Positions 7,829 through 28,800 of a stretch of DNA of 64,000 nt are shown piece by piece. Within the stretch, counting starts at the first letter, position 1. Every line of letters begins with the position of its first letter. Made by a program: the position numbers and the translations under genes. The notes below the pieces were generated by a model. That model did no database searches. It was not told the DNA's origin and saw only the letters and a program-made list of their open reading frames with translations. The DNA comes from Thalia democratica. Lineage: Eukaryota. The DNA lies in assembly GCA_965202585.1 (NCBI GenBank), contig OZ241827.1:23374001-23438000 (forward strand). Reading direction: 5' to 3'.

Positions 7829-10800
7829 TTATGCGTTCGACTGAAAAAAGCAATGTTAGTTATTTGTATTTAATTAATTAACAACATTAAATAATAATAA
7901 AAGTACGTATTAAAAATTTTTATAAAAGGTTTTACTCATTTTATTTAAGTAAGTTAAAAATGCTGTTTTTGTTAAAGCTCTAACTTAAGAATAAAGTTAA
8001 AACAGTTTTTCTAAATAACCAAAAAATTTACCGTAGGCTGTAAGTAAGCACCTAACAAAGTTTGCCTCTAATCGACTGATGTCATGCATTTTATTATTAC
8101 TTTTACTTACCCCAAACGCCATAGGGTTATCGAAACCCTTGCTCTGATCTTTGTTGTAAGTCGTGTCGGGAACAGACGTGCTCTTTGATGAAGAATTCTT
8201 CTTGTAGTAGATTCCACCAAACACTGCGGCCGCTATGACAACTATCAACGCAAGTATTATTCCGAACACGGCACCGCCTGAAAATTATTAAACAGAGAAA
8301 TTGATAGGCTCCAACTAAAGTCATAAACAAAACTGACTAGATAACAAAATAACTCAAGTTAAGATTTTGTTTGTAAAAAAAAGTTATCATATATTTCACA
8401 AAAACTAGTTTTTTTTAATAAATGTTTATTTGATAGTAAAGAGGCAAGAGTGAAGTCTTTAACTTTTTTAATTTAGTTGAAATTGTATCGTAAATCATAA
8501 GATGAGCTATTATATATATTAACCTGACAACCCAGTGCTAGAATCATCTTTGGACGGGTCAACTGGATTAATTGGTTGTCCGCCAGATCCTAAAAGTTGT
8601 TCGATTATATTTTAAAATTTTTACTAGTTTAAATGCTTTAGAAGTGGCCAAGGTTAGTTCAAAAACATATTGATATAAGTTACAACTATAAGTAACTTAA
8701 CTATGAAAAGTCAAGTTTTAAAAAGTAATGTTTTTTCAGTGAAATAAATATGTTAAATTTAATTTAAAACTACATTATTTTATAAATAATGCTGATAGCA
8801 GTTTTTTTTTAAAGGTGTTTTTTTACAAGCGTTACGTTTAAAAAAGCTATGAAGTCGAAAGAAACAACTACAACACTGCATGTAACACAACACGATGTTT
8901 TCAATTATGACGTCACACAACCTGACGGGTAGAAGCACCCAGTGATGTTGCCTCCGGCGAAAGTTCTGTCCCAGCAGCAGCCCCTGCTCTCAACACACTG
9001 GTCTTCGGTGATTCCCGCGAATCCGCACTCATCACGTTCGTTCACCGCCACCTTGCATACCGAGTATTCTGTTGAATATTTCGAATGTTGAGTATGTGTT
9101 TTCTCGAAATACTTAATGACTTGATCGTTTATAAGTGATATTAAGCTTTTTTAAGGTTAAGTTTTGTTGTTTTTGTTTTACATAGACACGTTCTTATAAG
9201 TTAGACCTGTAACACCTTAGTTTTTCATTCTGAATATTCAAAGTTTTTTTTATTCAATGTTTAAAGTCTTTTTATCGTTTTTTTATATAAAACAGATAAG
9301 AACTTCGAAATGACTTTGATTTTCATGTTCTATTTTATTAGAAATATTTATAAGTTTTATTATAAACATTGGAAAAAGTTTAATGTCTTTTATGACTAAA
9401 TACAAAAGAATATATTTTTTTAATAGTTATAAAAACACTAGTAAATAAAGATTTCTTTTGGGATGTATAATGTAGAAAAAATATAAGTTGTTTCAATTCT
9501 TAAAAAACTCAACTAGTTAAAATATGTTTTTTAAAACTAAATAAACTTTTAAAAAAATATCTAAAATTGAACCTAATTTTCTTAATTTAAAAATTGAATT
9601 TAAAAAAAAATCAATTCAACTACAACACAAAACGTTTCATACAAAAAAAAAGTTCTCAACCACAAAGCTTAAATCCTACAAAGTTAAAAAATCTATACTT
9701 TTTTCAAACCTTTAGGCCTCTTGCAGACGAACCCCCTGGTTTCGTAGCAGGGCACGTCGTTCCAGCTGCCGTCCCACGGGTACATCTCCACGCACTCCTC
9801 CCCGTCCTGGCCGTTCGGCTCCCCGTTCGCCCAGTTCGAGTACTGGTAAGGAGAACTGTCGCTCCACGTCCATCCCTCTGTATGTGACTCGTTTAGTTTG
9901 TATTAACTTTTTTATACTGCCAATTTTTGAGTACTGAATAGTTTTTCGGGTTGTGTTTTTTAGCAGTTTAGTTGTCAAATTTTCAGTTAAATTTATGGAA
10001 TTTTACTGAACCTATTCCGTTTTAGCCAAGTTTACTAAGTTACAAATAAGTTTTTTTTAAATAGTAAATTAATTTGACAAAAACTTTTGAACATTTCAAA
10101 ACTCACCGTATCCGTTGCTTCTGAGGCCGATGTACAAATTGTGGTAGTTGGGTGAAATCTTGTCGACCAACTGTTTAACTTCTTCTGGGCTGTGAAAGCT
10201 CGCAAGCTCGGCGTTTCGCTTCTTGCATGAAAAGTCCGCCTCCGCCCATGTTTTTGTTTCAGAAGTATATATTCCGGGCTGAAAAATAACTTCCGTAAGC
10301 TAGATTACTAAGCTTGATAGAATATTTTACTAGTTATTGTTTTTTTCACATCATATCGTGAAGTAACATCTATTTTTTAATTCTATTTCAATAAAGTAAT
10401 GTGAATAACAGTATTATACATCCGCGATAGAACGTAAATGGAAACTTGCCGTTTTTTGCTACTTTTATTAATACTAACTTTAAAAATGGAAAAGCTTAGT
10501 TTTTTAGTTGTTCTTAATTAGCACTTGGTAAAAACTACATTTTGTTTCTGTACAAATTACTTCAAGGCCAGAAAAAAATAAGTTTTGCCTAGCAACGAAC
10601 CTCTACATAGTAACAGTCCCTTCCGTCGCTGAACAACCAGTCGTTGTCGCAAACTCCGTCTTCAACGGGGGTTTCCGGGGGAGGGGGAATTTCCTGCAGA
10701 ATTTTCTTGCAAACATAGGGGAGCTGGGTGTTGCAGTTTACCCCCTGAAGCTGGTTGCTAAGCACCTGCCACCTTCCGTTGCTGTGTTATGAAAATTGCG

Positions 10801-16800: not shown

Positions 16801-19800
16801 CTAACTGTTTTCAAATTCCTTAAAAAACAGACTGACTATGTACATTTAAACCAATAAGTATTTTTTGTATCAGGTTATTTATAAAATATTCAAAAACATT
16901 CAAAATATCCCGAATTCAATTTAAATGCACAAAAATAACTAACCGTCGGACCACTGGTATCCGTCTTTGGGGACCAGGTTGTTCAGCCCTATCCAGAAGT
17001 ACACGTAAGAGTTGACGGTGACCCGCTGCACGGCCTGTATCACGCTCGCCTGCTCCTCCTGCGAGTGCACCGACACCAGGTCCGCCCCCAAGTGGCGACA
17101 GTAGTCCACGCTTTCCTGCCACGTCTTCCGGTCAGCGTCGTCCAGAGACTCCATCACCTGATAGTTGAAATATTATAAAGTTATTTTCGATGTCTTAAAT
17201 AAAATTGAATGTTTATATTCCTGAGCAGTAAGTGTCGATACAAAACGTGTTTCAGTATTGCTGTAATTGAAGATTTGTATAAGTTTAAAGTGTTTGCTAT
17301 TTAAATTTAGATTTTAAAAAGTTTTTAAACTTTTTTAATAAAGTAAACTTTTAGAGGTTCTAATACCATTGATTGATAAACAAAATTGACTTTACCAAAC
17401 AGATGATGTCTTTAAAAGCAATAAGCTGCAGTAGAAATTTCTAAACAAACAGCTACTCAAACATACAATAAATAAAATTTCAAAAAATATTGTTCAGAAC
17501 ATTATCACACCATGTAGCAGTAGGATGAAGTGGAATCGCTTAGCCAGCCATCTGGGCAACTCAATGAGGGATCCGGGGTGGTATAGGAAGGTTGCGGGTA
17601 TCCAACCCTCGGTTTCTCGCATACAAAGTGGTAGTCGTTCACACACAAGTCTACGTTCCACTTACCTGTCAGTTGTGAGAAGTGTATCGATCTTATAAGT
17701 TAAATGAGATAAAAAACAAACAGAAAACTTTTTAGTGATTTGACAAACACTTTATTAAATTTGACCCTTATTTTCTTTATCAAAAATACTTAATAGCATT
17801 GGCACTTATATAAAAACAACAGCATAGGTTGAAAAACTTAATTAACTATTTAATTTTGTCTATCGAACAAAATTTAATAGTTACCGAAGATGTAGTAAAC
17901 AAAAACTAATTGTATTTATACCCATTATACAACATCTTTATGAATTTAAAATACATCTAGATATATCAAACTCTACAAATTTAAAATACAGTCTAAAAAA
18001 GACGTTTTCCAACAGCAAACCAACCGTTGATGGGGTCGAGGTAGGTGCAGGCAACAGCCCGCTTGTCGCTGCAGTACATCCAGAAACCGTTGTACTCCGC
18101 ATCGGTGCTGCACCACGGCTCGTTCTGCCTGGCCGGAGACGGCACGTCGGTCGTGCACTCGTTGTACGTCACTCCCTTGTACGTGAACGGCAGCGCGCAC
18201 TCGTACCTCGTTTCTGTTGAACATTTGTATGGTATAAATTTATTTTAAATAGTTTGAAAATTTATTTTATTTATATTGAAAGCATTATTTCATTAGCCCT
18301 CAAATTCTTAAAACTCGTACCTTTTTTATACAAAAGCTATTTTAAAGAAATAAAATGATATTTTTTTCGTTTTTTTTTTACTCTAATTGTTAAGAACTTT
18401 TTGATGTTTAAAATTTATAACTACGCTAAAAGTAAAGTATGTTTAAAATATCTAAAACTTTTGTAAATTTTTTTCCTAGTGTTTCTTTTCTTGAAAACGC
18501 ACAATGAATATTTTGTTTAATGTAAGAAATATTTACGTATGACTAAAATTTAAAAAGTCAACTCGCAATGGTTTATTCTGTTTAACTTTTGATTTTTACT
18601 TTTGAGCCACAAGTTTTAGACTGTTTTATAATAAAAATTGATGCAATCGTCAAACTATGAAACAAATCTAACGGGGCTGTCCAACGTTCCAGTTTGTGTA
18701 AGTGACCGGCTCCTTTGATTCCCATTCGTAAACGATTTCGGCCATGTTGTCGTCTAAATTTCTTCCGGCGAACCCGATCCATGCTGTGTAGTTCAGACCT
18801 GGACGCAGTTTTGCGGACACCTGAAAGTTTTTAGTGTTTGGACACAACACGTTTTTTTAATTACAAACAAGTACATAAAACCAACAACTTTTATTACTTA
18901 CTTCTAACATTATTACTCGTTTACATGAAATTAAAAACCTTGGCTAAAGGTATATTTGAAAATTTGATGATATACTTTGTTATAAAAAAATAGTTGTCAA
19001 AACAGTTGTGTAACCTTAATATTTAACTAATAAAACGCCGATATAATGCGTATGACAGCTTTCAAATAAATATATAAGCCTTTAATTCTTTATAGCGGAT
19101 AAAGCAGTTAAAATTTTAAGGTAAAACAATGCTTATAAGCAGAAACCAAATCGCAAATACAATTTCAACTAACAAGCGAGTTGACGAAGGCTTGCTCGTA
19201 ACCGTCATTGATGCTGACCAGGTACGCTCCGTCTTTGTTCTCAGCGCAAATCTCCCTCGCATACCTGTATATGGTGTCGTCGGTGTTCACGTAGTAGCAC
19301 GAAGACTCTGTTTGACATGTCTCATAAACATTTACGAGTAAATACTAGCTGATAGCGGATAGGAAGTTATTAAACTTTCTTAAAATATAGTATCATCAGT
19401 CAAAAAATCTAAAACAACAATTTAGCAAGACAATTCAGGCATTAAAAAATCTTTAGGAAACTTAAAAACAAATATTATCTATATGTTCCTAAAGACCAAA
19501 TAAATTAGCAACCGACCATAGGCCGACCAGCCGGGGTCGCAGCCTTCTTCCACGGGCAAGTCACCAGTTCCCGTGTCCTCCATCAGTTGCTTGGACTTCT
19601 TACACATGTAGGGCAGCTGCTGGGTGCACTTCTTGTCCGACCAGTACCCCTCCAAACGGATAAATTTCACGCACTGCGGATCCTGACCATTTAATAAGTT
19701 TAGGTTGAGAAAAATAATATATTGCATTATAAGTAGTTTTTTTATGAAAGTTTCATGATAGATAAACTCTTAAAGATTTCTTATTATTTTTTTTTCAATA

Positions 19801-22800
19801 GAAACAGTCAAAAAACTAGAGAAAACCAGATAATCATTTACAAACACAAACATCTATTTTATTATTTGTTGTGTTTATGTTCACAGTTATAAAGAGTCGT
19901 TGACTAGTGTTTTGTTTGCTTAACAGTTAAAAGATCTTAAGGCATTAGCTGATCGCTGAGATAGATTAAAAAAAAAGTTCTAACAAAAATATCAACTAAC
20001 TCCGCCATCTGGTTCGTTGAACGACCACTTAGTATAAGACACAGGAGATCCGTCGACCCATTGGTAGTAGTTGTACTTGTCCAGATCATTCAACCCAATC
20101 CAAACATCTACATCTTCTAAATCTTCTCTGTCTGTTGGTAATAAATTATAGCTAATGTTTTTTTTTTGAAATCATACCAATAGCTTTAGAAAATAAAAGT
20201 AAGTTTTAACATTAACTGTTTTGAAATCAAATAAATTTTAGTTTTAAAAAACCAAAATTTGCAATAGTTATTACCTAAACCATTTAATATTCAATTGAGG
20301 TACAAACACGGTATCCGAAAAATAAGCTCATGCAAAATACTATAGGTGCTTAGTTTAAAGCTTAAAAAAGATTTAAATTATCATCAAGCTAATAAAAATT
20401 CTATACATTTTATTGTTTCTGTTTTTCTAAAATCTTTTTTTTTAATTCGCTGCTGAAACAGATAATAGATTTACACTTTCATTTATAACTCTTTTTTTAG
20501 TCAATTAATACAAAAGGACATCAGCAAACCTTGTTTTTAGCAAACAAGCAATAATAAGTAACTTGAATTATCCATAGATAATAAAGGAAATATAAATATT
20601 TAACAAATAAATGTTAACAACTTTCAATATTATATTAAAACTAACGTCCCTGCCAGATGACACTTTCGACGAAATCGTTTTCTCCCTTGGTGTTGATGCT
20701 GGCCAGGTCTCCTCCCATGTCAATACACTCCTGTCTTGCCTCGTACCACGTCCTCTTCACACCCTTAGGCGAGTAGTAGTAGCAGTGGTCCTTCCACGCC
20801 TTCCAGCCCGCAGCGTCGTCGCACTTAAACACTGTGACGTCATAAACAATTTGTTAACATGTTTTTTTACATTTCCTTTGTATTTAAAAGTTTTAGATTT
20901 TTATTTTTTAATTACGTTTTTAGTCTTTTATTTAAGTAAAACACAATAATGAAAATTTTAACTTTTATAAATAATTATTAAACTGAATAAAAATTTTAGT
21001 CGCTAAAAGGTTTAAATGACAAGCTAGCTTACTAGGGTGGTTGTGTTAAAGTAAAGTTTACTGAGTAACTAGAGTTACCAAAGCGTGTTTACAAACCTTT
21101 TCCTTCGAAGTTGATGGAATTTGCAGATGTTTGGTATCTGTATTTGTTTAATTTTAATTTATTTTAGTTATTACAAGTACGTATTTTTTGTCTAATGACA
21201 AAGTTAAGATGAGGTAACTTTAAGTTGTTTTGTGTTTTTAAATTTTATAAAAATGCTAATGAATGACAGGAAAACTAAAAAAGTTTACTTTAAAAATGTT
21301 AAACTTTACTTGTGCTTGTTTAATTTAGTCATTTTAGTTTAAGTTAGCAAAACTCTAATAAAGTAAAACCGATTAATTTTTAAGTATTTTTGTTAAAAAA
21401 TTTAATTTGATATAAAGCTTATAATGATAAGCAAAAGCTACTACTACTATAATTAAGCATTGATGCTTTAAAAAACGACGAAAGTTTTTTAATTTAATTT
21501 TAATTTAATTAAATAAATTAATTCTTAACTTCATTAGTTTCCTTAATTAATTTATAATACAGCTCAATAGAACTATTGTAAACATATCAACGCTTATCCA
21601 ACTAATTAAAAAGATAGTAGTTGCCTTTAATCATCTTAGTTGATTTCGTTCATTATAGGTTAGCTTTAACTTTTGAAACAAATTAAAACTGAAATCAACA
21701 AACGCTTGTGAGGCGATTCCGTTGTTGACAGAACCGGTGTACTGTGCTTGACCCGCCACCAAAGCGTAACTCACCGATCCGCCATGTTTGTTGTTCAGTC
21801 TTCCCGCGTGGATTGCGGCCGGACAAATTGCGGATTCCTGCGCAGTTTAAAAAAAACATTGGTTTTACACACAAAACAGTTGTTTTTAGTGTACATAGTC
21901 GTTAACTTTGTTGATTTACTGTCTTAATTCGGTAGCTTTTTTTTTACCAGACTTAAACTATTTGTTAAGAAAAATAATTGTGATCATACGACGTTATCTA
22001 AATATAAAAAACAAAATAACTATTTAAAATTAAAACATTTTTGTCTTATTCATTTATTTCTTAATTTTTATCGACCAACGAACCTGGGCATATCTTTGTT
22101 TAGACACGTCACCTCCGCCGTATACCGGACCGCTGGACGGATCTTCGACGCATCCTGCCGGACAGTCTATTGTGACGTCATTGTTGAGGCCAGTGTCAAA
22201 CTCCTTCGCAGTGTCTGCCGAATATTTTGATTACTTTTGGTCGTACAGTTTTTTCGGTAGTTTTCCAAATACAAATTAAAGAGCTTTAATGCAATTTGTA
22301 AATTTGGTCTTTAAATACAGGCTATCATCGCAATGTTTTTGTCACATGAACTGCTATTAATACTGGACATCTTTACTTATTTAAGAAATAAAGTTAAAAA
22401 GTTATTCTTGTTTTGAATTTTACTTTTGGCATAGAAGTTTTTTTAAGTATGTTTTGAAACCCTTTTTGAAAACGAGTAAAACTTTCAATTTTTTTTTTCT
22501 CAAAGAATTATTCATATTAGTTGTCTAAGTACTGTGTGACATATGCTTTTAAACCAATTCTTTTTATTAAACCTCAACAATATCAATTACCTGCACAAGT
22601 GATCCTCTCGTAGTTGTAGCAGCCCATCACTTCGAACTGCATCACGATGTTTCCCACCCAAGTCCTCGGGATCAGCCTCAGGCTCTTGGTCGCGATCGGC
22701 TCCCTGAAGATCGACTCCTCGTTCGTAACCTGATCGTGAAGCCCCTCGAATATCTGGTTAATTGAAGCATTTTTATATAAGCTCTCTAATCTAACAGTAT

Positions 22801-25800
22801 ATACTTTAACTAGTTAGGGCAATGAAGTAAAAAGATACAGTTTTAAAAAGATCCATTAAACTTTTTGGTTGGTTTAAGCCAAAAATCTTATATTTATAAA
22901 CTCACATGCATAAACCCTTCTTGGTTGGTGTAATAGTTGAACTTTTGCCCATCGTCACTGAATTGTATGTTGTAAGAAGTGAGGTAGTTTCCTGTTGTTG
23001 TAGTTCCGTACAAGGTTATTCCTGATACCTTAGATATATTTATGAAATTTAATATTGTTACATAGCTATTATTGTAGTAAGATGAGTTAATCGTTTATTG
23101 ACTTTTACTTACTTGAAGCAGTTTCTTTTTTGTCAAAAAACTTTGTAAATAAAAATAAAAACACTGCTATCAACATTGTTAAAGTTCAATGCTTCATAAG
23201 CTTTCTGTTTGTGAAAGAAATAAAATTTTAGTTAAAATACAATACTTCAAGCTGAAATGTTTCCCACGTTCTTGCTTGGTTTTCGAAAAATACAAAAAAC
23301 TTTGTAGAAATGTTTTCAAACCTTGAAGAAGTCTTTAAAAGAAACTTGTATCCATTCAGTAGCTGCATTAGTAGATGGAGTCCAGCCGGTTGGTGTGTAC
23401 GCTGTATGTTAACAATTTTCAGTGAAGAAAAAGGATGTATCTTAAGATCTGGTACCCGTAATTAAATTAAAAAATGTTCAGCTTGTGATGCTAGCTACTT
23501 TTTCAACTAATGAAAAGTTTATGTGTTAATTTACAATTGTTTAATATTAAAAAAGAACACAAACATATTTCAATTTTTCAATATTTTAAATAGTCAAACT
23601 ATACTTTAAAGAAAGTATGCTTATTTAAAATTATATATTAGTAAATAAAAAGTCACAAAATCAGGTTTAATATGCATGTTAAAGTAATTTGAACAGAGAC
23701 TTAAATACGATTAGCCCTAATGGTAAACTTTAAGTTTTACAAAAGACTTGTTTAATCTTGGAAAAAGCTCAAATTTTATAAAATTTAGATAATAAACACA
23801 TAGGAAAAGTTCTAAAAATAAATACATATAAAAGATAAATTAAAACTACTTAAGACGCATTATTACGTCACGAATAAACTAACAGGGACACGTTGGCACG
23901 TCACAATACTCCCATTCTTTGGTGGGGTCCGGAGAATAACACCAGGGTCCATCTTTACCGTCCGGATTTCTGCATTTGTTTTCCCTCAGCCCTGCATCCG
24001 GGTTGGTAGTCGGGTTGCTAGGTAACAGAATAAGTTGATTAAATGTTTACATTCGCAAACGTATAATTTAGTGTTTGATATTTAGTTTTATTTTATCTTA
24101 AAAAAGTTTTAAATTTTTGTAACTTTTTTTTGTATAGAAAAGTAATTTTTTCACAGTCTTGTAATATGTTACTACAAATAAAAAGAATTTTATTTTGTTT
24201 GAAGCTGTATTTATAAACAATCTTAACGTATTAAGTAAAAAACTTCGATGTACATATATCAAAACAGTAGCTTTTTTACTTTGACATCAACTTAAAATTA
24301 CAACTAACATTTTGTTGGTAGGATCCGTCCAGTCTTTACAATCGAGACCAGTGACAGTCTTGCTGACGAATCCCCTATAACCTGCTCCATTGTCGTTGCT
24401 ATCAGCCAAACACGAGACTGAATATAATTTGGTTAGCTTTAGTTGAATTAAAACAAAAAAAAAGACATGTAGGTTAAAGTTTTAAACAGTTAGGGGATTT
24501 GTAGAGGTTGGTATGAATACCAAAAAAACGTTAGTTAAGTAAAATTCAAGGAATTTTCATAAATAAAAGAAGTAGTTATATTGCTAGTAAAGATTCACGG
24601 AAATTATTTTTAACATGACAAATAACTTAAGTTAAATAGATTAATTTAATTTAGCTTTTTAGAACTTCAACAATTTTAATTATCGTAGTTATTTAAAGAT
24701 TTCAAACTCAAAAATGTATTTAACACAATAGTTATTATATTTCTATTTTTTCAAGACTTTATTGTGAATTATCTTATTTGCATTATTATGCTTTATTATG
24801 CATTATCTTATCGTAGTTGAGATCTCTTAATTTGTTTTCTAAAAATCAAAACATATAGTAATAGTTGTTATTATAAACTTGAACAAACATACTAAAGGCT
24901 GCGGTCACAACATAACGTACAACTGTTAAGTTTTTATAATCAGTTTTATTTATTCACACTCTACTTGATAGAGCTTGTATTTATTAGTTTTGTGAAATTA
25001 ATCACTAATGGATATATTGTTAAACTTAACGGTTTTAGCTTATTTTTGCTTAAAACTATAGTTTAACTCTATAGTTGATCCAAACATTTTTATAAATCAA
25101 AATAAAATAAAAACACCTAAAACAGGTAAAAAAGTAATAACTTTGCAAACTAACAATCGTTTTGAAGAGTGGCTCTCGCCTGTTTAGCTTCGTGTCCGGA
25201 GGTGGAGGAAGATGCGGTTATCGAATTATCAGGAATGAAGCCATCAGCCATGCCAAGAGGGTGAAGACAACCTGAATGCAAATGTGATTTTTTTTACAAT
25301 CAATAACAATATTTTAACAAACAGTGAACTTTTACTTATTTGGTAATATTTATTTTTTTTTAGTTTTAAAACTTTTGTTGAATAAGAATTACCTAAAAAA
25401 ACTGTTTACTTACAAAATAAATTGAGATAGAAAGTTTCTTTATTATTAAAATAATTTATTTTTATCTTAAAACGGTCCATGTAAAAAATATATCGAAAAC
25501 TAAGCATATTTCTGGCAGTCTACAAACTAACTATAAATAGTTTAAATTTCCATTCAAACTAACTGTTATTACAGCCGATATATTCCAGCCTCATGATGCA
25601 ATCATCGAACCACTCCAAGGGGTACAACCTCATGTGAGTGGCCACGACGCTCCTTGGAAATATATTTGTCACGTGGGTGTTCTGGTCTGAGTTTCCACCG
25701 AATTCCTGAAAGAAACAGTTAAACTTAGTTGATAGAAGTTATTGTAAACTAGACATAAGCTGAAAGATGCTTTATATTTTAAAAAATTATAGAAATTATT

Positions 25801-28800
25801 AATGTCAAATATAGTTCTTATTAGTTTGATTTGGCAAGAAGTTTACTTAATTCTACAAGTATCAAATTTTTAAGATCGTGGAAATTTATTCTAATATGTT
25901 AGTTTAGAAAATTAAAATCAAAACTTAAATATCAATCATTACTCAGTTAGGAGCTGTCAAGTAAGATAATTTATTATTTAGCTAACTAGACAGTATTTAG
26001 TACTTTTTCATTAGTGATCCGTTATAAGCACGATAAAACAGCACTAAACTTAAACTTTACAAGGTTTTTTATAAGTATTTTGTTGAAAAATGTAAGCAGA
26101 ACTAAATAACAAACACTTTAAAATTTATTCAATCAAACTAACAATAGGCTTTCCGTCCAGGTCGGACAAAAACTCCCACTTTTGCACGTTAGCCCCTACA
26201 TTATGGTGGTCCATGCTGTGAGCCACTTTGTACTTGGTCACCCACTGTCTGTCCGTCAACTGTCCAATACCATTCCTTCCCTAGTGAACAGCTTATATTG
26301 AGTTTAAAACCATATGAATTTTGCTTTATACGTTTGAGGGCAACAGTTTTGACTATTTACTTTTTTTGTTATAAGAAAAGTATAACTAATTTGAGACTAA
26401 AATAGTTATTTTTTTCACTACATAACAATAATGTATCAAAACCTTAAATGCTTATGTATTGGCTAGTTGAACAAAACTCAATTTAGTTAGTTTTTTTTGA
26501 CAGTTTGAATTTTGATAGTTATCCTAAAGCACAACAATAATAATTGTAAGTTATTTTCGTATAAATGTACACTTTAGTTACAAAATTTATAAAAAAATGT
26601 TTTCAATGAGAAAAATAAAACTAAACTTTTACTAAAAGCTCTGTTTTTAAAATTAAATTACAAATTTTTCTAAAAATTTTTGATGCTAACGTATTTGTTT
26701 GGAACGTAAACTTTTTTTGTTAGCAATAAAAAGATTAATTACTAATATCATTATTATAATATTTATACAAAATTAATAGAATTTATTATCATTATTTTCG
26801 TTAATATTATTAGAATTAAGTATTTTTATTTAATACAAGTGTTTAAACAGATAAGTTTAATAAGAAACTATGATTAATAAAATGCAAAGAAATTTCAAAC
26901 AACACAAATTATAGTTATTAATTATCTGAAATTAACTCTAAAACCTTGACAGAATTCGGAGGTAATAACTTTTGTACCTAGTTTTCAAACAGTAACTGAA
27001 ATTTGTTTGTTGAAAACAAACTTAAAACAATATAATCAGAAGAAGTTACCTGTGTGATCACCCCTTTAACGTTGACCGGTTTCGGAAAATCAACTTGTAG
27101 CCATGGTTCAGGGTCTTTGGACTGGGACAACGGTTGCCAACCACCATGACCTTGACCTTTTTGAATGTTGTCCTTGAATTTAAAAAAAAGATAGTTACTA
27201 TCTACAAAGAGATTATTGAAAGTGTTCCGTAGTTGAATACTTAACGAAAAACATAATATTATAAGCCAAAGATGCTGTATTTGGCTTTAAATGTTATTTT
27301 GTACGGAGGATGTATACGCGTCTTAACTTCCGAGCTGTATAAAATTCTGGAAACTTGAAACGTACTAGAAAGATTATAATAACTACCTTAAATGTTATTA
27401 AATGCATTTGTAAATCTTATCTGTAGCTAAAATTAGTATTTTTTTTTAATATTTTCACTCACAAAATCAGCAATATCGTCCGGAGTGTTTAGTCTACCTC
27501 TCCACGCTCCAAAATAATGATCTTTTTCAGATGAAGCCGTCATCGCAGAGTCTGGAAGAGTCGATCCGTACTCCGCACCTAAGTGTCTGAAAAAATCGTT
27601 TTCATTATGGAAATCGAGGTTATGTTTGAAGTAAAATTTAGTTTAACATACGTTTAGTATTTAAATGGAATTTACAATTGTACAATACAGTAATACAGAA
27701 CAATAATTGATCCAAAAGTCTGTCACCAAAAACAGGTGATTAATAAATATATCTATTATATTTAGTGAACAAAAAGATTTAGAAAAAAAGCGAAAACTAA
27801 AAACAAGTTTAGTTTTCTTTTTTTCAACAACAACAAACTTGAAGCAGCAAGACTCGTTGGCGTCGCACTCCTCCTCCTCGCCCTGGTCCCCGATCACGCT
27901 CGTGGTGATTCCCCTCTTCTCGCACATGTAGTGCTTGTGGTAGTAGCAGTCGATGTCGTTCCACGTCGAGTCTCCCGTGTAAAATTCCCCGCAATCCTCG
28001 TCACCAGCGTTGTTTGGCTCCCCTAGCGGATAGAAAAGTTTAATATTTCAAAAATCTTTGTTAAAACTCTGAAGAGTTTGATAATTTAAATGTTAAGTTG
28101 CTTGTTTAGTTAACTTTAGCAAACTTTAATTTAGTTGTATGTATACATTAGTTTAACCTTTAAGACATTTGATTTGAAATCTGTCCAACTTATTTTTATA
28201 CACTTATATAGGTTAGGTTTACTTAACAAACAAGCAAATGAAAAAAAAAAACTTTTTATTTGTAATATTTTGAATAGCAAATTAGTTATCTTTTACTCAA
28301 TGGTTATTTGAAAACAATATGGTTTTAAAAGTTAGTTTTAATTAATATAAAAGTGCTCTGCAAACCAACCGAGGCCCCAGTTTATATAGGGAAGAGGTGA
28401 CCCATCAGACCAGGCCCATCCGCTGTCGGCAGTGTCGAGTATGTCGTGGGGAAAGGGGTTCGAATCTATGAGGCCGATCCAAATGTTCGCGATTGTGGGT
28501 ATTCCCTGGACCACGGCTGTTCGAACGTTATTATGGTAAGATAGCAGGCTTAACTAACTTTGTCCATATAGACCAGTTTTAAATACTTTGCTTAACTTTT
28601 GCTTAAAAGTTTGCTTTATCTGTTTTAAAATGAAACAGTTTTATGTGCACAGATTTTTAAAATTGCTTATACGCCGTATAAATATTTCAAGCCTATTTGG
28701 AATAGTTGTAGTTAGAAACATTTATATTAAAAGAGTCAGTGCTATACATACTTGACTCCATTTTAAATTTGTGTTCATATCAATTAATATAATGAATCAT

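Follow-up and report, generated by a model that had tools for sequence, protein, structure and literature searches.

The window that we analysed is a stretch of 64,000 nucleotides of the Thalia democratica genome (contig OZ241827.1, here C2; C2:23374001-23438000 of an 802-Mb assembly), AT-rich animal DNA with ~28% G+C. On its minus strand lies a long gene. Many C-type lectin domains are encoded in its open stretches, along with two discoidin (FA58C) domains, one LCCL, one FN2 and one trefoil domain, and a transmembrane segment. The product is a type I membrane protein, a multi-C-type-lectin receptor. The first discoidin domain, FA58C-1, is complete by itself and closes with its own Cys. The second, FA58C-2, is the subject of this report: its coding sequence is interrupted by two exons that together encode a kringle.

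We read the FA58C-2 exons by hand and then checked them with a script; all of the introns are GT..AG (Table 1). The discoidin begins in exon A, gives way to the kringle exons K1 and K2, and resumes in exons D, E and F. K1 and K2 sum to 243 nucleotides (81 codons) with phase 1 at both edges, and only two linker residues stand on each side of the kringle. The kringle thus has the makeup of a class 1-1 module: it is flanked by phase-1 introns, and its length is a multiple of three, 243 nucleotides in the window and 255 in a paralogue on C4 (see below); we took the phases from the sequence, and the RNA joints fixed them. Removing K1 and K2 by script left an open frame, which encodes an intact discoidin whose loop has the normal length. 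An earlier description of the locus, the sequence-only reading, had given these exon coordinates and phases, the 243-nucleotide total and the in-frame removability, and the sequence and the script agreed with it on every one. The intron that splits the kringle internally lies at the same site in several other kringle genes of the genome (split matches 4-36 / 29-79 and similar). Within the intron between A and K1, the segment at window positions 24685-24883 reached a summed contig depth of ~30,000 in a DNA run, X4 (bin value 30111), versus ~100 elsewhere, and dozens of loose ends fell at 24813-24863 in the same run; this segment is a very high-copy repeat or a mobile-element fragment.

Table 1. 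Exons and introns of FA58C-2 with its kringle, and the neighbouring FA58C-1, in window positions.
Feature	Position	Strand	Description	Evidence
FA58C-2 exon A	25155..25271	-	Discoidin N-terminus (Cys, PLGM, ITASS, ...ARATLQND); ends in phase 1	Sequence; phmmer; RNA joint 25155>24417
Intron between exon A and kringle exon 1	24418..25154	-	Phase 1; GTTAGT...CAG	RNA joint "skips 737, CT..AC" in X1, X2, X3
Kringle exon 1 (K1)	24309..24417	-	109 nucleotides; Cys1, YRG motif, Cys2; ends in phase 2	Pfam; RNA joints on both sides
Intron within the kringle	24018..24308	-	Phase 2; at about Pfam profile position 36/37	Joint 24017>24309 in X1, X2, X3
Kringle exon 2 (K2)	23884..24017	-	134 nucleotides; CRNPDG, GPWCY and WEYC motifs, Cys3-Cys6; ends in phase 1	Pfam
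Intron between kringle and exon D	23402..23883	-	Phase 1; GTTAGT..CAG	RNA loose ends at 23884 and 23401
FA58C-2 exon D	23322..23401	-	Discoidin re-entry; starts SYTPTGW	Pfam; NRP1 b1 alignment; RNA joint to exon E
FA58C-2 exon E	22906..23028	-		Pfam; RNA joints 23026>23320 (cut +2) and 22753>22906
FA58C-2 exon F	22591..22753	-	Ends in C-terminal Cys (...EVMGC...); phase-1 junction to LCCL exon at 22214	RNA joint 22214>22591
FA58C-1	25564..27591	-	Ordinary discoidin without insert	Pfam; RNA joints 27169>27462 and 26279>27049

The identity of the insert was established by profile scans made exon by exon, with K1 and K2 scanned separately. The Pfam Kringle profile (PF00051) matched K1 over profile positions 3-31 (E = 1.4e-4) and K2 over positions 37-79 (E = 2.4e-14; score 53.9 bits, cut-off 34.3). 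The module's six cysteines (module residues 3, 27, 52, 63, 75 and 80) span 78 residues and would pair 1-6, 2-4 and 3-5. K2 aligns with the kringles of plasminogen, HGF and prothrombin. The host is recognized in pieces: the F5_F8_type_C profile (PF00754) matched exon D over positions 24-42 and exon E over positions 39-82, each below the cut-off alone. Both neuropilin-1 b1 (YPENGWTPGEDSYREWIQVD) and factor VIII C2 could be aligned with exon D, and a local hidden Markov model aligned the whole of FA58C-2 with ordinary discoidins, the kringle forming the single gap. Both of the cysteines that close the eight-stranded barrel of a discoidin, N- and C-terminal, were found in the window sequence.

These alignments bear on a reading in which the domains are not nested at all: exon A would be a linker or else a degenerate remnant, with the kringle placed between two domains and FA58C-2 truncated at its N-terminus. 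Exon A alone indeed has no Pfam match, but Pfam scores the first 20 residues of a discoidin weakly. Moreover, exon A holds an N-terminal Cys, PLGM, ITASS and ARxxL, and phmmer aligned it to the discoidin domains of DDR2, neuropilin and factor VIII, at their extreme N-termini; FA58C-1 is already complete, with a closing Cys of its own. With the fold models given below, this makes the non-nested arrangement very improbable. A kringle within FA58C-2, interrupted after ...ARATLQND as the sequence-only reading had proposed, is what the Pfam matches, the six cysteines, the alignments and the RNA support.

We placed RNA contigs from three marine metatranscriptome runs (X1, X2 and X3) on window positions 21700-27650. 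They covered the exons and left the introns uncovered. The joints 25155>24417 and 24309>24017 were present in all three runs, and the modelled joints 23322>23028, 22906>22753 and 22591>22214 were likewise all given by RNA contigs. One contig (X3, record 9) spans A, K1 and K2. The junction between K2 and D appeared as loose ends at 23884 and 23401 whose overhangs agreed with the far exon in 19 of 20 and 13 of 14 bases, matches that are unique in the window. Thus, the mRNA order is A-K1-K2-D-E-F. The RNA contigs of the three runs showed no exon between A and D besides K1 and K2, which excludes the scenario, named beforehand as fatal to nesting, that extra exons finish FA58C-2 before the kringle begins. 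The same contigs speak to the notion of an artefact, in which the kringle exons would belong to another transcript nested in the intron or the assembly would have joined unrelated DNA. We found no point in its favour: besides the contig that spans A, K1 and K2, contigs of X1 and X2 join K2 to K1 and have loose ends that reach into A and D, the region is covered by DNA contigs of an independent run, and the same exon order recurs at three other loci. We give this notion practically no credence.

The three loci emerged from the same genome. A whole-genome search with the Kringle profile found at least 13 kringle-bearing loci, and a genome search with exon E gave one other match, directly beside one of the kringle loci. 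We then searched 20 kb around three loci, the spliced domain serving as tblastn query. All parts, in the order FA58C-1 / A / K1 / K2 / D / E / F, were present at C6:~55.129 Mb, at C4:~71.691 Mb and on C287, whereas the other kringle loci of the genome (L005-L012) had no discoidin exons alongside. The intron phases at the C4 locus are identical to those of the window. At the C6 locus, exon A and K1 form one open exon and the upstream intron is lost (L021:9292-9523, C6:55129292-55129523, plus strand). C287, an unplaced contig of 67 kb, carries a near copy of the C4 paralogue (~71.69 Mb) with almost identical protein pieces; this contig is possibly a haplotig, or else a recent duplicate.

In alignments of the spliced domain, the window kringle is 50-55% identical to those of the paralogues and the C6 and C4 kringles are 80% identical to each other, versus 49-65% for the host parts. 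The six kringle cysteines and the re-entry motif CPSYTPTGW are invariant across the window gene and its paralogues. This pattern of conservation is that of a selected, constitutive part of the receptor rather than of an optional cassette.

The sequence-only reading had also suggested that the kringle might be switched by alternative splicing. As a regulated cassette, the kringle would be skipped (25155>23401) to give a plain discoidin or included to give a kringle-capped one, and the cell would in this way switch between ligand specificities. In favour of this, the symmetric module (phase 1-1, 243 nucleotides) can be removed with the host left intact and its loop of normal length. At the lost-intron site of C6, moreover, the codons GGT GAG TGT spell GTGAGT in the same phase, which could be an internal alternative donor or a chance of codon choice: the sequence arises in about 1 in 16 cases from codon choice for Gly-Glu-Cys, and these residues are encoded in C4 too. 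Against the switch, the joint 25155>23401 was absent among the joints listed for the three RNA runs while the inclusion joints stood at high contig depth. Contigs lose rare forms and eleven low-support joints fell outside those listed, so the absent joint counts only weakly against skipping. Conservation of the kringle equals or exceeds that of its host, and no intron separates host from kringle at C6, so the kringle there cannot be a clean cassette; the annelid protein described below carries the graft as well. Skipping stays compatible with the reading frame in the window gene, but the switch has found no support so far. We regard a regulated cassette in the window gene as unlikely, and a toggle in some copies of the family, by exon skipping or by an internal donor, as no likelier. 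The contigs of the three runs showed inclusion only.

We wondered how far the arrangement extends beyond this genome. A search of a representative protein set with K2 returned multi-kringle proteins with summed scores as its top 150, and local phmmer detected a discoidin in none of them. A scan of JGI metagenomes with K2 gave eight loci, all of them kringle-repeat proteins, apparently of protists, without a discoidin. Among marine metagenome and metatranscriptome contigs, L013, L014, L016 and L019, probably from protists, contain long frames with two or three kringles; in the first three of these the kringles follow a common Cys-rich N-terminal region, and L019 (72% G+C) has repeats, three kringles and a transmembrane segment. 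A word-indexed search with a 55-residue exon piece gave no candidates, its length window leaving out full-length proteins. A query taken from a long amphioxus protein, namely its kringle region, brought in long proteins, among them several invertebrate proteins with both Pfam families. Kringle and F5_F8_type_C stand in series in amphioxus P0156 and P0160, Ptychodera P0163 and Antedon P0164, the proteins of this group that were scanned with Pfam.

A protein of the annelid Owenia fusiformis (P0162, 2606 residues, annotated "Macrophage mannose receptor 1-like") has the nested layout. It contains 12 Lectin_C matches and a domain at residues 798-1035 in which a discoidin N-terminus (798-836) is followed by a kringle (837-919) and then by the rest of the discoidin (920-1035); two ordinary discoidins come after it. 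In an alignment with these two, the Owenia kringle stands at the column where the window family has its own. A search with the Owenia nested domain as query found itself only. In a kringle tree the four nested kringles group together and the free kringle of the same Owenia protein falls elsewhere, with support of 73/57 and in 70% of bootstrap trees. A single old insertion is therefore favoured but not demonstrated, because the support in the tree is weak. Thus, the presence of the graft in relatives, which had been set as a check on the claim, extends to the loci on C6, C4 and C287 and to an annelid. In the papers searched on kringles with discoidins or on nested domains, we found no description of this layout, nor any of the Owenia layout.

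The Owenia nested domain also served as a stand-in for AlphaFold2 modelling, run with two separate alignments. MAFFT joint alignments put discoidin rows on kringle columns (GW...WIQV against GPWC...WEYC), however the rows were cut or weighted; a joint alignment was therefore unattainable, and we built two separate models and claim no geometry between the domains. With discoidin rows only (A1), both of the separated discoidin pieces reached a predicted local distance difference test score (pLDDT) >90. Foldseek alignments of this model spanned both discoidin halves and the whole query, with template modelling (TM) scores, normalized by target, of 0.84 for lactadherin C2, 0.84 for NRP2 b1 (root-mean-square deviation 2.5), 0.82 for factor VIII C2 and 0.88 for CASPR2. 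With kringle rows only (A2), the insert had pLDDT 88-96 and superposed on plasminogen K4 (1pk4) with a TM score of 0.88 and a root-mean-square deviation of 1.6 Å. In these models of the Owenia homologue, the separated discoidin pieces are thus predicted to close into a normal barrel and the insert to fold as a kringle. A remnant or a linker in place of exon A is hard to square with an N-terminal piece that is part of the barrel and with TM scores of 0.82-0.88 over complete discoidin chains.

We then asked where on the discoidin the kringle is inserted. The insertion point lies three residues after the Leu of ARxxL and seven before a conserved Trp. This Trp, in exon D, is matched in factor VIII C2 (1d7p) by chain position 49 and in neuropilin-1 b1 by the GW. 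In retinoschisin (RS1), W112 is on spike 2 (PMC5418834), and RS1 W112 is the same conserved Trp. In factor V, the residue of C2 spike 2 that inserts deepest into the membrane is R2080 (PMC11257402), and by our own residue counting it falls in the insertion loop. The correspondence of these residues supports the view that the loop between the ARxxL strand and GW is spike 2, at the ligand-binding end of the discoidin barrel. The sequence-only reading had placed the graft in the spike region of the FA58C binding face, and the Trp alignment, RS1 W112 and factor V R2080 all lead to the same place.

The binding properties of the kringle itself were approached by alignment with the ligand pocket of plasminogen K4. 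The window kringle keeps Asp55, while Asp57 is replaced by Lys and Arg71 by Glu. The position of Asp57 holds Arg in the paralogues and in Owenia and is thus basic in all family members. The two acidic residues plus Arg71 that characterize the pocket of lysine-binding kringles of the plasminogen K1/K4 type are therefore not all present, and the kringle of the window family is probably not a classical lysine-binding kringle. Plasminogen K3 offers a parallel: like the window kringle, it has Gly-Lys after CRNPD, with a basic residue in place of the second acidic one of the pocket. Plasminogen K3 binds lysine poorly. It differs from the window kringle in being a free tandem kringle rather than a loop insert.

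Taken together, these results suggest that a two-exon, phase 1-1 kringle was grafted into the spike-2 loop of the second discoidin and is a constitutive part of a lectin-rich receptor, a reading to which we assign a probability of roughly 0.8. The core of it, the grafting of a class 1-1 kringle module as a domain within a domain, had been proposed from the sequence, and the intron phases, the RNA, the paralogues and Owenia speak in its favour. Recipient genes take up class 1-1 modules in their phase-1 introns (PMC3927616). By exon shuffling, a two-exon kringle would have landed in an intron of an ancestral receptor gene, within the spike-2 loop, and this insertion would predate the duplication of the receptor family. 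The host may have tolerated the graft because the first and last cysteines of the kringle are presumably disulfide-bonded: the Cys1-Cys6 bond would tie the ends of the module together. On the discoidin apex the kringle would then act as a constitutive cap that remodels or replaces the spike-2 contact surface.

Several points weigh against this reading. The corresponding loop of FA58C-1 holds a phase-0 intron rather than a phase-1 intron (...DIADF, then the next exon), so a pre-existing phase-1 recipient intron is assumed. The window kringle alone has lost three residues at the end of K1 (24309-24330), among them PHxH (WTDPTNK versus WKSQSPHNHQ), a motif that is present in the paralogues and in most kringles; some decay of function is therefore possible in the window copy. 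The RNA evidence comes from contigs of environmental samples and not from reads of the sequenced animal. The fold models cover the Owenia homologue only, and the position of the kringle relative to the barrel would follow from the identity of the loop and from nothing else. More tentatively, and in our view doubtfully, the kringle-capped discoidin may be an old composite binding module that predates the split from the annelids and works as a single unit, with a ligand specificity absent from each domain by itself.

The gelatinase FN2 insert lies within the catalytic domain, and the closest precedent for the graft is found in these proteases, MMP-2 and MMP-9. As in the window, a small, disulfide-knotted class 1-1 module was shuffled by exon into a folded host, near a functional site, and is constitutive. 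The gelatinases differ in pairing a protease host with three FN2 repeats, whereas the window pairs a discoidin beta-barrel with a single kringle in a binding loop. An internal FN2 insertion is on record for MMP2 (PMC3927616).

Among the proteins found here, Owenia P0162 is the one that shares with the window both the kringle in the same discoidin loop and the many C-type lectin domains (12). It differs in having three discoidins, an extra free kringle and a WSC domain, and it has no LCCL, FN2 or trefoil match in Pfam; P0162 is a predicted protein, and it is ~22-37% identical to the window domain. The invertebrate deuterostome proteins, amphioxus P0156 and P0160, Ptychodera P0163 and Antedon P0164, likewise unite both domain families in one extracellular mosaic protein, but as complete tandem domains; in one of them F5_F8_type_C occupies 20-143 and Kringle 445-522.

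The receptor as a whole recalls the mannose receptor family (MRC1, PLA2R, DEC-205 and Endo180), whose members are also type I membrane proteins with many C-type lectin domains and one FN2. The plan of this family is an N-terminal ricin-type domain, an FN2 domain, 8-10 C-type lectin domains, a transmembrane segment and a short tail. The window gene departs from it: its FN2 lies inside a lectin domain rather than at the N-terminus, and two discoidins, an LCCL and a trefoil domain are added and interposed.

According to exon-shuffling theory, class 1-1 modules may land in any phase-1 intron, even one that splits a folded domain. Among extracellular mosaic proteins, few nested cases are well documented, the gelatinase FN2 insert being the usual example. 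The kringle in a discoidin is a new instance of the nested mobile modules already known from the gelatinases, and a clean one: it sits at the ligand-binding end of a common scaffold, is transcribed, has been kept through several duplications and is shared with an annelid protein. Its relevance to domain evolution and protein engineering is moderate; it offers a natural template for grafting whole domains onto discoidin loops, and it raises a testable question, namely what the kringle binds at the discoidin apex.

The FN2 domain is a second nested module in the same gene. It is encoded by a 189-nucleotide, phase 1-1 exon at window positions 18025-18213 on the minus strand (Pfam fn2, E = 8.6e-11), which sits between the exons ...WNVGQP and GKWNVDLC...FVCEK of one C-type lectin domain and also encodes a short stretch of the lectin domain downstream of FN2. 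Two nested modules in one gene suggest that this receptor family tolerates or favours grafts.

Two further observations concern the genome and the receptor. At C1:15318001-15341000 on the minus strand (L027-L029), we found a tandem array of at least 10 intronless frames of ~270-380 residues, each with a discoidin (TISASSNQPEDIANKPWSP...LLGC) and all closely similar to each other. Finally, the cytoplasmic tail that follows the transmembrane stretch of the window gene (window ~8000-8284, minus strand) holds FDNPMAF, which we take to resemble the FxNPxY internalisation signal of endocytic receptors of the LDL-receptor type.

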